DNA from: Macrostomum lignano
Lineage: Eukaryota
NCBI GenBank assembly: GCA_002269645.1
Contig: NIVC01000032.1
Location: 682,001 to 746,000, forward strand
DNA: 64,000 nt
Direction: 5' to 3'
The position numbers were made by a program, and so were the translations under genes. This document shows positions 39,601 through 48,600 of this stretch, piece by piece. Every line of letters begins with the position of its first letter. Positions within the stretch are counted from its first letter, which is position 1. The notes beneath the pieces are model-generated. The model saw nothing but the letters and a program-made list of their open reading frames with translations. It searched no databases and was not told the DNA's origin.

Positions 39601-42600
39601 GGCCTGCAGGTGAGGAGACAAAAAGCATTTTAAAATTTTAATTTTCGAGGAATTTCTCACTTTGACGCAAAATTGAAGACTATAGAATATTAAATGTTCT
39701 TTTAACAGATTAAACAGTCATAAACTTTTAAAAACAAAATATTAAGTACCACACAAAGAGAGATGAAAATGTATTCAAAGTTCCTCTGACCTGCTCAAGT
39801 CGGTGCATTCTTTTGAGGATTTGAATGCTAATCTAGTGATGAATGATTTGTTTAAAATCTGTAAAACAGTACGGATCCAGTAGTAAAGGTTTTGTATTTA
39901 TTACACTATAATATTAATAGTTTACCATCTTTCGAAGTCGCTACATTGATAATTATATAAGGCACGGATTAATATTAGGATGCAAAAAGACACGCCTGTG
40001 TAATAACTTTGATCGATATAAAAAATCATAGGTCAATTTATCATCCACAGAACATTTTTAGTGACATTGACTGTTGAAATAACAGGGTGGACAGGAGAAC
40101 ATTGGAACTAGACACGATCCAATGTACATGTAATAGTATTGGTCAAGCAACCTAACTAAACAAATTATTACGTCGTTATCCGTCGATGTAATGCAAAAGC
40201 AAATATGTGTCATCGACGTCTACAGACACTGGGGAACTTCGGCCGACAATTGTCTATATTGTCGAATGGCAAGACCAGTTGACACAGTTATTTCTGTTTT
40301 CAAACTCAATTCAATTTGCAGCGTCTACGTAGCAGGCGGAACCTTAGGAGAGGTGATCCTCAATAGGATGTGTAAAGTCTTTGCGTCCCGTCTGCCGGGC
40401 CCCTTGCCAATGTCGAACTGGCACTGGTGAAACTGTGAGCTGCGACTAAACTGAAAGTTCTTCTCTCGGAAATAGTTCACGATATCTCCGGAATCGTTCT
40501 CGCACAGGGCCACCAAGTCTACTGTGACTCCAGTGCCGGCTGGGAAGCTGGACTCTTGCGACACCAACTTGAAAGTCCAGTTGTCGCACGACTTCTGATA
40601 GCCCATTTTCCAGTCGGCATCCCGGATGGGGCTCGGGACTGGACCGGATTGGGTGCGGATCTCAACCTAGAGCAGAAGAAAGTAAATTTAGCAACACATA
40701 AAATACTGGCAGTACAGTTGTTATTAAAACAAACCACTTTGTAAAGCCTTCATCTCAGAAACGTATGTTGCATGTTATGCCGTAGAGCCTTTGACCTTTT
40801 GAAAGGGAAAATCGATGTCTAGTCGTAGAAGTTTTAATCCCAGAAACGGAGACTCGATGCCTAATCGTAGAAGTTTTAATCCCAGAAACGGAGACTCGAT
40901 GCCTAATCGTAGAAGCTTTGATCCCAGAAACGGAAACTCGATGCCTAATCGTCAAAGTTTTAATCCCAGAAACGGAGACTCGATGCCTAATCGTAGAGGC
41001 TTTGATCCCAGAAACGGAGACTCGATGCCTAATCGTAGAGGCTTTGATCCCAGAAACGGAGACTCGATGCCTAATCGTAGAGGCTTTGATCCCAGAAACG
41101 GAAACTCGATGCCTAATCGTAGAAGTTTTAATCCCAGAAACGGAGACTCGATGCCTAATCGTAGAGGCTTTGATCCCAGAAACGGAAACTCGATGTCTAG
41201 TCGAATAACTTTGACCCTTTGACCTCAGAAACGGAAACTATAGGTCTTGTCCAGTCTTGTCTCGAAGAAATTTTGACCAAAAAACGGTATCTACAAACCT
41301 CATCATAGAATTTTTGACCTCGAAACAAAGATCAGGAAGTTGGACGCCACTTACCTAAGAAATGGCAGTTGAAGGTCATCTTGTAGAAGTAGAACTTTGG
41401 TCCCATTTTTATGCCTTTTCATAGAATTAAGAACCTAAGTATCTGATATAATATTATGACCTAAGAACGAAGTCTAAATCTTTTATGTTAGTAAAGAAGC
41501 GAGTTCCCATCAGTGAACTCATAAAAACTAAAAACACTTAATTATTTTCAACTATGGTCAACCAAGTCACTAAACATTACTTCAAGTAGCTACCAGCGGA
41601 GTATGGAAATATCAACTAGTTAAATAGGTATCTAAAGGCGCATGTGGTGGACACTAGGAAAAGAAACTTTATTTGAGAAAAATCACGTGATCCAGAACCT
41701 TGTGGACCTACTCGCGAGGTCGCAGTTATTTGAAAAGAAAAAGAAAAATAGAATAGCCACCGATGAAAAGCTTAAGCAAATATAGAAACACACTGCAGGG
41801 TAGCTGAAGGATCGAGAAGCCAGTAAGGCAAGGTGGAGTAAATAAAAGCTGAAACTATAATTCATCTTGTTTTTCTGTTAGGGCATTAATAATTTAATAG
41901 GCCAGTTAGGCCAGATTTGCCATCGACAGCTCAGCCGCAGCTATTACGCGACGCACCTGAAGGCTGCGTACGGCTGTTCAGTCGCCACACACCCTCAATT
42001 ACCCCAGCTAATGCTGGCATCCATTTTACAGCTGGGTGAACTGAAGCAATGCAGAGTTAAGAGCCTTGCTCAAGGACACAAATTGTTCCAGTGGGATCGA
42101 GAATCGAACCCCCGACCTTAAGGAGAGTGCTAGTTTATGTACCCTAGTTAATCCAAGAAGAACACGACTACCCTGCTGCTTAAGTGGTACAATACTCTCA
42201 TCTTGTGTCCCAGTTTAATTTGATTGATCAATTAATTACCTGCAAACCGAAGCGCATTGTGTTGCCAACTTTGATATTGTCCACAGCCAGGCACATGTAG
42301 CTTCTCGGTCGATAGAATTTACTAGAAAATTCGGCCTGTTTGAGCTCGTGTTGCCAGGGGCACAGTGCTCTGTAGCGATAGGCTTTGGCTATCAAGTCGC
42401 CTAGGAGCTTGCTGGACTCTTCCGTCTGACTGAGGCTGTAAAAAATTGAATTTGGTCTTTGAAAAAACTTTTCTATCCCAGTGGTCTAGCGCGGCGCTCG
42501 ATTCCAAGTGCAGTCACATTAATTTGGGGCTGAATTGGAATCTCGGCTTGGCTCTGCTCGTGCAATTAACGCCCAGCTTGAGGGCCAATCCCAAGGCACA

Positions 42601-45600: not shown

Positions 45601-48600
45601 AATGCTGGCACCCATTTTACAGCTGGGTGAACTGAAGCAATGGTGAGTTAAATGTCTTGCTCAAGGACACAAATTGTTCCTAGTGGGTCGAGAATCGAAC
45701 ACCCGACCTTCAAGTCGTGAGACCGACGCTCTAACCACTAAGCTGCAACCCCCCTGGATTAATAATTATAATGATGAGTTAGTAATGAGGCAGTAACCAA
45801 TGGTCGCTTCATTAAATGAAATAATCATTCAGTAGAATCTGAAAAACATTAAAAGTAATTTATCTTTAGAATAAAGCTGATTATAAAAAAGTATATTTAG
45901 ATATATATTCTCTAAAATCACCACCAGTTTCATTAAGATATCTGTTACTATATACTATATTATATACTATATACTATATACTATATACTATATACTATAG
46001 TATACGCTTGGATACTATAGTATGGTTGAATAATGGTTTTGCTAGTAGATTATCAGACAAACAGTAGCAAAATGCTTAACGAATGCTTTACATACAGTTT
46101 ATCGGTTTGTCAATGGTTAACAGCCACGCATGTTTACTATTAGGTTAATCACTGGAACAGTAACGTTTGTTAAACTTCGGCCATGCCAACACAATGTATC
46201 AATCATCGTTGGCTACATGTAACACTTATTTGCACAGGGTCGCCATCACAAACCCGAAATACATGTACATGTATCAAAAACCGAAATATCACAAACCCGA
46301 AATATCCCAAACCCGAAACATAACATACCCGAAGTATCCCAAACCCCAAATATCACAAACCCTAAATATCCCAAACCCGAAATATAACATACCCGAAATA
46401 TCACAAAACCTAAATATCCCAAACCCGAAATATAACATACCCGAAATATCACAAACCGAAATATCACAAACCCGAAATATCCCAAACCTGAAATATAACA
46501 AACCCGAAATATCACGAACCCGAAATATCACAAACCCTAAATATAACAAACCCTAAATAAAATAAACCCTAAATATAACAACCGCTAAATATCCCAAACC
46601 CGAAATATAACATACCCGAAATATCCCAAACCCGAAATATCCCAAACCCGAAATATCACAAACCCTAAATATTATTAATCCAAAGTTCTAGCAATGTTCA
46701 ACGCTATTTTGGCTTTTGGAGTTATAATATTTCGGGTTTATGATATTTCGGGTTTGGGATATTTCGGGTTTATAATGAAAAGCGCTTTTAGGAGCTGTGA
46801 TTTTCAGGGTTTGTGCTGCCCCCTTCCATTGCAGATTAATAAGCAATGAAATACTCACCTTACCAGCCGATTTGATGCCGCGAATCAGGCATATGACAAC
46901 CACAATCCATGCTAGCAGCAGACAGACCACCAACTCCCATTTCGGTAGCCCCATATTGTGGAAACCGTTCGATATGGACAGAACAAAGTTGCTGAAATAA
47001 GAGTTTTAATATAGATGGAGTTTGTGCAGTTTATGAGAATCAGAATGATCACGAAGGACAGAGCTTCAGGCCCTGTTAACGGTCTTATCAGCACTCAACT
47101 GACACATTTATCACTTTTCTGAATTTTAGAATTCATGATATGATTTAGGTTGATCCATAAGTTTCTCGGCTTAAAATGCAAGAAATGGTTATCAGAAATG
47201 GGCAATACGCTAAAATACCGTCTTGCTTGCCAAGGGTCATCGACAGAATTTCTGAAAGCAGCTGCTTTTTTAATCAACCTTGCACAAAGAAACTTTTTGC
47301 TTAATTAAGCAATTAGCAAATTTTGACTGACGATAAGAACTCTGATCGATTTAGTGCCAATAAAACTTAATAACTTGTTCCACGTGCATCTCGTTAATGC
47401 ATTTTGCAACAAAGACAACCCACCCTGAGAAGTCATGGCATGTACAGCTAAGCTGTTGCGGAATTTACGGGATACTCACTGAAAGTACTCGTCGCTGGAG
47501 GTCTTGGGCGCGGGCACGGAGCCCAGAAAGTTGTGCAGCAGGCTGATATTCGTGGAGTTCAACGTCGCGGCTTCGTCGTAGAATGTCGACAAGGCGGTAC
47601 CGTCGGGCGTGTCGTTTCCAGGAAACGGCCTCATGGCCCCATCCGAAGACTCCATCACCCAGCTGGCGTTGTTGGGCAGCAGGCAGCTGTGGTTCAGAGC
47701 GAAGGCGAAGAACCCGCCCTGACGCCTGCACCGATTTCTCTCCGACAAGGTGCGAATGTGCACGCAGTCGCCGGTGTTCCAGCTGGAGCTGCAGGTGGTC
47801 CAGGGCAGGTCGCCAGTCACTGAGCTGATGCTCTGCCAGAAGTAGAACATCGTCCAAGCGATCAGCATGTTGTAGTAGATGCTGCCGCAAAATGTGATGA
47901 TAATCATCGACCAACCGATGCCTGTTTTGTAAAAATGAGGGAAATTGTTGGGAGTGCGTTACTGTTGTTTATACAGTTCGGTTGAATTACATAAAATTAG
48001 TAGATTGTGCTTTCTTAATGTTAAATGTAGTTAGGAACTTTATTAAATATCCAGGGCGATCACAATGAGTCCTGAGAGGTTGCACGAGAGTGGGGAGTGA
48101 GATGTCCATGAGAATCACCAGGTGATTGGAGAGATGTCCACGAGAATCACCAGGCGATTGGAGAGATGTCCACGAGAATCAGCAGGTGATTGTGAGAGAT
48201 GTCCACGGGAATCTGTGATAAAATACTATCGGTCATGAATATTTTTAATGCAAAAGTTAATTTAATGTAAAATGTTTAAGGTAAAGCACCAACAATAATT
48301 TTGTTTTGGCCGCGAGTAAAAGAACCAAAAGAAAGAGTTGGAGCCTGAGTCCGGCTTGTTATCAAGTAGGATGAGGCGTGGAGGTGAGTATACCTCGTAC
48401 TAGGGTTGGCGAAAAAAAACTGCTATCACATACGAGCTACCTGCTCAAACATATTTGCGCGGGTAATAGAAAACCCAGCAGAGTTAAAGCATTCAAGCTT
48501 AACAATAAATGCTTCATTTTTGGCTCTCGCGTTCAAGAGACACACCCCCAAAAACACTTAGGCACATTAGCTATGCATATAGAAGCTGTACCTCTGGGTG

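Follow-up and report, generated by a model that had tools for sequence, protein, structure and literature searches.

About 10% of the genes of Drosophila melanogaster occur in nested structures, and 71% of the nested genes lie antisense to their host (PMC3814207). Among the same-strand nested genes of Drosophila (29%), 72.5% consist of a single exon and the median intron number of the multi-exon ones is one, although 50 including genes with same-strand, intron-containing guests have been tabulated (PMC3814207). In mouse and human, more than one tenth of the genes form host/nested pairs, with a slight orientation bias, and an interplay of the partners via premature termination or interference has been discussed (PMC11694760). 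The gain of nested genes is regarded as a mostly neutral colonisation of introns. Here we analyse a stretch of 64,000 nucleotides from Macrostomum lignano (assembly GCA_002269645.1, contig NIVC01000032.1, positions 682,001 to 746,000 of the forward strand; hereafter the window), in which a complete gene for a BTB-BACK protein (the guest) lies in an intron of SLC6-A (the host), a member of the SLC6 transporter family. It is likely that the two represent a genuine sense-strand, multi-exon host/nested pair, in which the guest would form its own transcription unit and would have been gained in SLC6-A after the split from its tandem paralog SLC6-B. The pair is an uncommon example of a well-known gene arrangement and not a new kind; the general picture, in which nested genes are common in flies and mammals, is left unchanged. 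An earlier note on this DNA, made from the sequence alone, had regarded intron-containing nested genes as mostly antisense to their hosts, which is correct for Drosophila (PMC3814207); in mammals the bias is only slight (PMC11694760).

In the mammalian pairs, nested genes favour long introns, and the same orientation is almost as frequent as the opposite one (Genome Res 2024, PMC11694760); these pairs come from a different lineage, and the pair described here is known from sequence. The same-strand, intron-containing nested genes of Drosophila (Lee & Chang 2013, PMC3814207) share with this pair the position wholly within one intron, the common strand, introns of their own and the lack of any exon overlap. 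Fly including genes are furthermore enriched for highest expression in the brain (PMC3814207), and the host here belongs to a family of neurotransmitter transporters. There are differences nonetheless: the guest has three introns, and same-strand multi-exon genes are the rarest class in flies; fly nested genes evolve fast (PMC3814207), in contrast to a ratio of non-synonymous to synonymous substitution rates (dN/dS, omega) of 0.055 for the guest. Unlike flies, M. lignano also possesses spliced-leader (SL) trans-splicing.

A sense-strand gene in the intron of a neurotransmission gene is likewise present in the cholinergic locus, where the first intron of ChAT (cha-1) harbours VAChT (unc-17). 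There, host and nested gene have a 5' exon and the promoter in common and serve one pathway, and VAChT is intronless in mammals. Here, in contrast, nothing links the BTB adaptor to the transporter. In M. lignano itself trans-splicing is frequent and its acceptors carry the motif [T/C]TNCAG (PMC8629364). The operons of this species that are resolved by SL trans-splicing resemble the pair in that the neighbours lie on the same strand and an SL-type acceptor precedes the downstream open reading frame (ORF), but the guest is placed inside an intron and not after an upstream poly(A) site, and its spacer measures ~2 kb, whereas the spacers of operons, with repeats removed, cluster around 100 bp (PMC8629364).

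All genes discussed lie on the minus strand. The features of the pair are given below in the order of transcription, with identities relative to a second copy of the locus, L002, which is the end of contig NIVC01000839.1 (412102-435109) and carries BOX15_Mlig013331g1.

36613..51074, minus strand: host gene SLC6-A; all junctions GT-AG, ORF intact, Pfam SNF 2.7e-182
51074-50919, 49573-49432, 47921-47480, 46991-46859, 39603-39445, 39209-39130, 39033-38909, 38842-38592, 37576-37196, 37118-36993 and 36747-36613, minus strand: coding exons of SLC6-A
46859..46991, minus strand: SLC6-A exon 4; ends ...IKSAGK, donor AAG/GTGAGT; 97.7% identical to L002
39604..46858, minus strand: SLC6-A intron 4; 7255 nt, phase 0, GT-AG; holds the guest gene
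44883..45448, minus strand: conserved region upstream of the guest, of putative function; donor-like AAAA/GTGAGG near 45300; ends at the acceptor TTTACCTGCAG (44883)
44807 (ATG)-44285, 43727-43316, 42435-42240 and 40666-40325 (TAG), minus strand: coding exons of the guest
44285..44882, minus strand: guest exon 1; putative 5' untranslated region (UTR) from 44882; polyglutamine (polyQ) tract and most of the BTB domain; donor TTG/GTAAGT
43316..43727, minus strand: guest exon 2; end of the BTB domain and BACK domain; 99.0% identical to L002
42240..42435, minus strand: guest exon 3; linker with the motifs AYRYRALCP and YRPRSY common to BTBD17-like proteins
40325..40666, minus strand: coding part of guest exon 4; beta-rich C-terminal domain; TAG at 40327-40325
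39877..40324, minus strand: guest 3' UTR; AATAAA at 39902-39897, ~295 nt upstream of host exon 5; 96.4% identical to L002, AATAAA conserved
39445..39603, minus strand: SLC6-A exon 5; acceptor TTGTCTCCTCACCTGCAG/G

Assembled on the minus strand, the host reads from an ATG at 51074 to a stop at 36613 through 11 coding exons. Its intron 4 is bounded by ...GCT GGT AAG/GTGAGT at 46859/46858 and by CCTGCAG/GCC GTG TAC at 39604/39603, and the join of exons 4 and 5 (GIKSAGK/...) restores a conserved SLC6 motif. The protein matches Pfam PF00209 (SNF) over its full length (E=2.7e-182) in two stretches, which are separated by a long extracellular-loop insert and reach profile position 522 of 524. It is 98% identical in amino acids (aa) to M. 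lignano BOX15_Mlig013331g1; the nearest named relatives are GlyT1/2-like and proline-transporter-like proteins with 44-48% identity, and a literature search for published work on the locus tag Mlig013331 returned nothing. In the earlier note the guest was assigned to 'intron 5'. The location is right; counted by coding exons this is intron 4, and the number 5 would require a non-coding exon upstream. Such a first exon is possible, because an AG directly precedes the ATG of SLC6-A: an acceptor (TAACAG) adjoins it at 51075-51080, as another does the ATG of SLC6-B (61480-61485).

The guest consists of four exons with GT-AG junctions throughout and intron phases 1, 2 and 0, which together form an uninterrupted frame of 490 codons ending in TAG. 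Its features span 45448-39877 and are thus contained wholly within the single host intron 46858-39604, without overlap with any exon of the host. The complete, spliced four-exon BTB-BACK gene that the earlier note had described on the same strand in an SLC6-A intron of 7255 nt is therefore confirmed to the base, with both frames intact. Counted from the first ATG (44807) the product has 490 aa, and counted from the second (44762) it has 475 aa. A 2-nt indel after the first ATG (window 44807, L002 3754) throws this codon out of frame in L002, and for this reason the true start is probably the conserved second ATG, in which case the first 15 codons would not be coding. In-frame stops are present upstream of the conserved ATG, and between the window and L002 there is a difference of 10 residues in the polyQ tract.

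Judged from its domains and modelled fold, the guest is a BTBD17-like protein and probably a substrate adaptor of Cul3. Pfam recognises a BTB domain (PF00651, 5.1e-16) followed by a BACK domain (PF07707, 2e-12), and the closest named relative is a BTBD17-like protein of Mya arenaria (37% identity, E=3e-73). Exhaustive HMMER searching of 1.84 billion representatives yielded 15 homologous proteins below 1e-30, none of them above 42% identity. Together with a dN/dS of 0.055 against the second copy, these E-values exclude a chance reading. The BTB-BACK core was modelled, from a shallow alignment, with a predicted local distance difference test score (pLDDT) of 80-93, and it superposes on the Cul3 adaptors KLHL11 and KBTBD2, in the case of KLHL11 with a root-mean-square deviation of 3.2-3.6 Å over ~250 columns. 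Vertebrate BTBD17 and molluscan BTBD17-like proteins possess, like the guest, a BTB, a BACK and a C-terminal beta domain, and BTBD17-like proteins have the motifs LPxIRFPMM, AYRYRxLC, YxPRxY and DWK(I/M)xY in common with it. In contrast to BTBD17, the C-terminus of the guest falls short of the Pfam domain TRAF_BTBD17 and its N-terminus bears a polyQ/acidic extension. TRAF_BTBD17 is present in two more distant homologs (P0004 and P0005). A fold search with the guest was dominated by the BTB-BACK core, so that the C-terminal domain received no name from it. Free-standing homologs in molluscs and a shark are collinear with the complete BTB-BACK-C-terminal architecture, and the homologous loci of a metagenomic eukaryote (L001) and of Lottia (L004) are free-standing genes without an SLC6 neighbour. 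The intron positions of the guest are shared neither with the Lottia homolog, which has one intron elsewhere, nor with that of L001, which has none over aa 41-439.

The nested layout is repeated in L002, which aligns collinearly with the window (86-96% nucleotide identity) and is ~5-10% diverged in non-coding DNA: host exon 4, the four guest exons and host exon 5 follow each other in the same order, with an intron of 6886 nt. Window and L002 could represent alleles, homeologs of a recently duplicated genome, or copies from sister taxa. Between them the guest has accumulated 15 synonymous and 3 non-synonymous changes (dS 0.049, dN 0.003, omega 0.055; Fisher p=5e-8 against neutrality), and host exons 3-10 have an omega of 0.074. 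Guest exons are 97.7-99.2% identical between the copies, compared with 90-95% for guest introns, and the ORFs of both genes are intact in both copies. Given these low dN/dS values, host and guest are both, by the pattern of substitutions, functional coding genes under strong purifying selection.

Splicing of the host across the guest, as the earlier note had supposed, is supported by GenBank. The annotation of the M. lignano assembly is based on transcript models from RNA-seq with ORFs called by TransDecoder; the resulting host protein of the L002 copy (P0009) covers exons 3-11 and reads IKSAGKAVYFTG across the exon 4-exon 5 junction. Since this protein is derived from RNA-seq, there is indirect evidence, for the L002 copy, of an assembled host transcript that joins exon 4 to exon 5 and from which the guest has been removed as an intron.

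To place the gain of the guest in time, the paralogs of the host have to be considered. SLC6-B (61479 to 53233, minus strand) lies in tandem with SLC6-A, and the array, made up of glycine/proline-transporter-like genes, has at least three members:

56275..58030, minus strand: SLC6-B intron 4; 1756 nt, no guest
63762-63640, minus strand: terminal coding exon of a third SLC6 copy (...GGGVNA*), the body of which lies beyond the window end

The statement of the earlier note that the matching intron of SLC6-B has 1756 nt and is empty holds, and tblastn detects no trace of the guest there even at E=10. An outgroup paralog (L003), with 72-74% aa identity to A and B as compared with 82% between A and B, possesses a phase-0 intron of 129 nt at the position of A intron 4, likewise without a guest. 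Because the guest is missing from both B and L003, and because the L003 intron is as short as 129 nt, the most parsimonious reading of these sequences is a single gain in SLC6-A, after the A/B split and before the split of the window and L002.

Other origins were considered and rejected. A loss of the guest from B with remnants left behind finds no BTB relic in B intron 4, and A intron 4 contains no SLC6 pseudo-exons that would point to a fusion of two half-genes. Nor is the guest a processed retrocopy: it has three GT-AG introns, no run of A after the 3' UTR and no flanking direct or inverted repeats, in agreement with the earlier note, which had spoken against a simple retrocopy. As the cargo of a DNA transposon it should be bordered by terminal inverted repeats, but there are none around it, those found being all inside a 16-nt satellite.

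The SLC6 array records a second, younger event. Exons 1-3 of A and B are 100%, 100% and 99.5% identical, and identity amounts to 92-97% over 47443-53575 versus 58377-64000, which includes ~2.5 kb of upstream DNA and introns 1-2; exons 4-10, in contrast, are 59-90% identical, with a dS of 0.79. The near-identity breaks off within intron 3, 37 nt past exon 3 and 585 nt before host intron 4, and the guest is located outside the block. The pattern indicates an old A/B duplication on which a recent event in the 5' unit, a conversion or a partial duplication, has been superimposed. The earlier note had considered the arrangement to be older than the recent duplication. This needs correction: the history is two-layered, the guest lies outside the recent block of exons 1-3, and it was most likely gained after the old A/B split (dS 0.79). 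The UniProt model P0008 of M. lignano wrongly merges a B-like gene with exons 1-3 of the next gene; as exon 1 of the B-like copy in P0008 is a different one, the recent 5' event may be specific to this genome copy.

Under the reading of a host/nested pair, the guest would be transcribed from its own promoter in the ~570 bp upstream, which retain 95.7-99% substitution identity to L002 compared with 85-95% for other intronic DNA. Its 5' end could be provided by a short non-coding leader exon (donor-like GTGAGG near 45300) or by removal of an outron through SL trans-splicing at TTTACCTGCAG, and its 3' end would be formed at the conserved AATAAA (39902-39897). For the host, splicing of exon 4 to guest exon 1, 2 or 3 leads to a stop 4-37 codons past residue 291, and a cassette made of guest exon 2, of guest exon 3 or of the two together shifts the frame, while a join of host exon 4 to guest exon 4 is in frame. 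With the exception of this in-frame join, a host transcript that was spliced to a guest acceptor or ended at the poly(A) site of the guest would be expected to encode a truncated transporter, and productive host expression would need the whole 7.3-kb intron to be removed in one piece. Because the use of guest acceptors would mostly truncate the transporter, expression of host and guest is most likely separated in time or between cells. If the guest affects the host at all, this would be a by-product of interference with transcription or splicing rather than a designed switch.

Several alternatives have to be weighed against this reading. The one that survives best, albeit as an unlikely one, is an intronic operon, in which the guest would have no promoter of its own and would be cut from the host pre-mRNA by SL trans-splicing and polyadenylation at AATAAA. 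The common strand of the two genes fits this idea, and so does the acceptor at 44883: its CTGCAG, conserved in L002 and situated 120 nt before the conserved guest ATG, agrees with the [T/C]TNCAG motif of M. lignano SL acceptors, although as a motif match only (PMC8629364). However, SL trans-splicing requires an acceptor without an upstream donor in cis (PMC8629364, citing Conrad et al. 1993), and the strong donor of host exon 4 should cis-splice to the guest acceptor. Moreover, of the ~2 kb that separate the guest from host exon 4, satellite and SINE (short interspersed element) sequence accounts for ~0.75 kb, compared with operon spacers of ~100 bp after the removal of repeats and of less than 1 kb, and the conserved 570 bp upstream resembles a regulatory region. 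Were the intronic operon true, the mRNA of a neuronal transporter and that of a Cul3 adaptor would come from a single promoter, and which of the two is made would depend on the competition of cis-splicing of the 7-kb intron with trans-splicing and polyadenylation.

It is considerably less probable that the host uses the guest exons as alternative 3' exons or as cassettes, which would yield chimeric SLC6-BTB products and no separate gene. The donor of host exon 4 and the acceptor of guest exon 4 are indeed both of phase 0, and the donor of guest exon 3 is compatible with the acceptor of host exon 5, but such a phase match is expected by chance one time in three. The early stops after joins to guest exons 1, 2 or 3, the conserved ATG of the guest with in-frame stops upstream of it, and a complete BTB-BACK-C-terminal protein that is collinear with the free-standing mollusc and shark homologs all speak for a gene in its own right. 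Slightly more doubtful still is the possibility that SLC6-A is not one gene, and that exons 1-4 and 5-11 are the remnants of two tandem copies flanking the BTB gene. The tandem nature of the SLC6 array, in which exons 1-3 have recently undergone a partial duplication or conversion, speaks for it; against this stand the transcript-based protein that spans exons 3-11 including the junction, an intron position and phase as in the paralogs B and L003, purifying selection on both halves of SLC6-A, and the lack of SLC6 pseudo-exons in the intron. Finally, a misjoin that placed the BTB gene in the intron, conceivable in a repeat-rich, polyploid genome with satellites at the 5' end of this intron, is practically ruled out, because the separate and independent M. 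lignano contig, 5-10% diverged, has the same order across all junctions.

Some observations weigh against an independent, functional guest as set out above. The last 179 aa of the guest have no Pfam match at E<=1, including TRAF_BTBD17 (PF23651), and the C-terminal ~100 residues are modelled as beta-rich but weakly, with a pLDDT of ~50-66. The case for a guest promoter, which we infer, is one of conservation. The comparison of the window with L002 spans a short time (dS 0.05-0.09). Furthermore, the guest is not in the GenBank annotation of L002, which lists only the SLC6 gene over 23 kb, and a Macrostomum protein resembling the guest was not found in NCBI, UniProt or metagenomic protein sets. 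The absence from the annotation is weak evidence, however, since transcripts overlapping repeat annotations were dropped from the GenBank submission, and the guest introns hold a SINE and minisatellites.

What distinguishes this host/nested pair are the three introns of the guest, the strong constraint on both partners and the trans-splicing organism in which it occurs. It provides a clean, selection-backed example of the rarest nested class, on the same strand and with several introns, and it brings to light a conserved BTBD17-like gene that neither the public annotation of M. lignano nor its protein sets contain; the two-layer history of the SLC6 array, with an old duplication and a recent 5' conversion, is documented alongside. 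As M. lignano is amenable to transgenesis, RNA interference and the mapping of SL reads, the pair is a possible test case for host transcripts that pass over strong internal acceptors and a poly(A) signal.

With regard to the array as a whole, the stop of SLC6-B (53233) is situated 2.2 kb upstream of the ATG of SLC6-A on the same strand. The SLC6 array could itself be SL trans-spliced or polycistronic, or its members could have a non-coding first exon.

The remaining features of the window are repeats and isolated coding fragments:

46245..46684, no strand: 16-nt minisatellite near the 5' end of the host intron
45449..45756, no strand: SINE-like repeat of ~300 nt with a tRNA-like 5' part, upstream of the guest in the host intron
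40801..41214, no strand: 42-nt minisatellite, 9.9 copies, in guest intron 3
4275-4868, minus strand: MBOAT acyltransferase fragment, Pfam 2e-08
10792-11232, plus strand: DDE_3 transposase fragment, 8.6e-07
22106-23044, plus strand: ORF of 312 aa, no Pfam match; the stretch is conserved with L002

Neither tRNAs (ARAGORN) nor Rfam families were found in the window, and for the SINE-like element in particular ARAGORN calls no tRNA and Rfam has no match. A second copy of this element, 90% identical and in the same orientation, is present at 41902-42121 in guest intron 3, and further copies occur at 976-1286 of L002 and at ~25112-25412 of L003. An array at ~56905-57282 in the B intron is weakly related to the 16-nt minisatellite of the A intron. 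Large minisatellite arrays also occupy introns and intergenic DNA elsewhere, at 37618-38591 (host intron 8), 1671-4312, 23840-31050, 32228-33790, 48729-49345, 49840-50861 and 54976-55296; the block at 23.8-31 kb is absent from the collinear part of L002. In guest intron 2 (42496-42986), a segment of ~259 bp is duplicated in tandem with 98-99% identity between the units, and L002 has one copy of it, which gives rise to a gap of 272 nt in the alignment.

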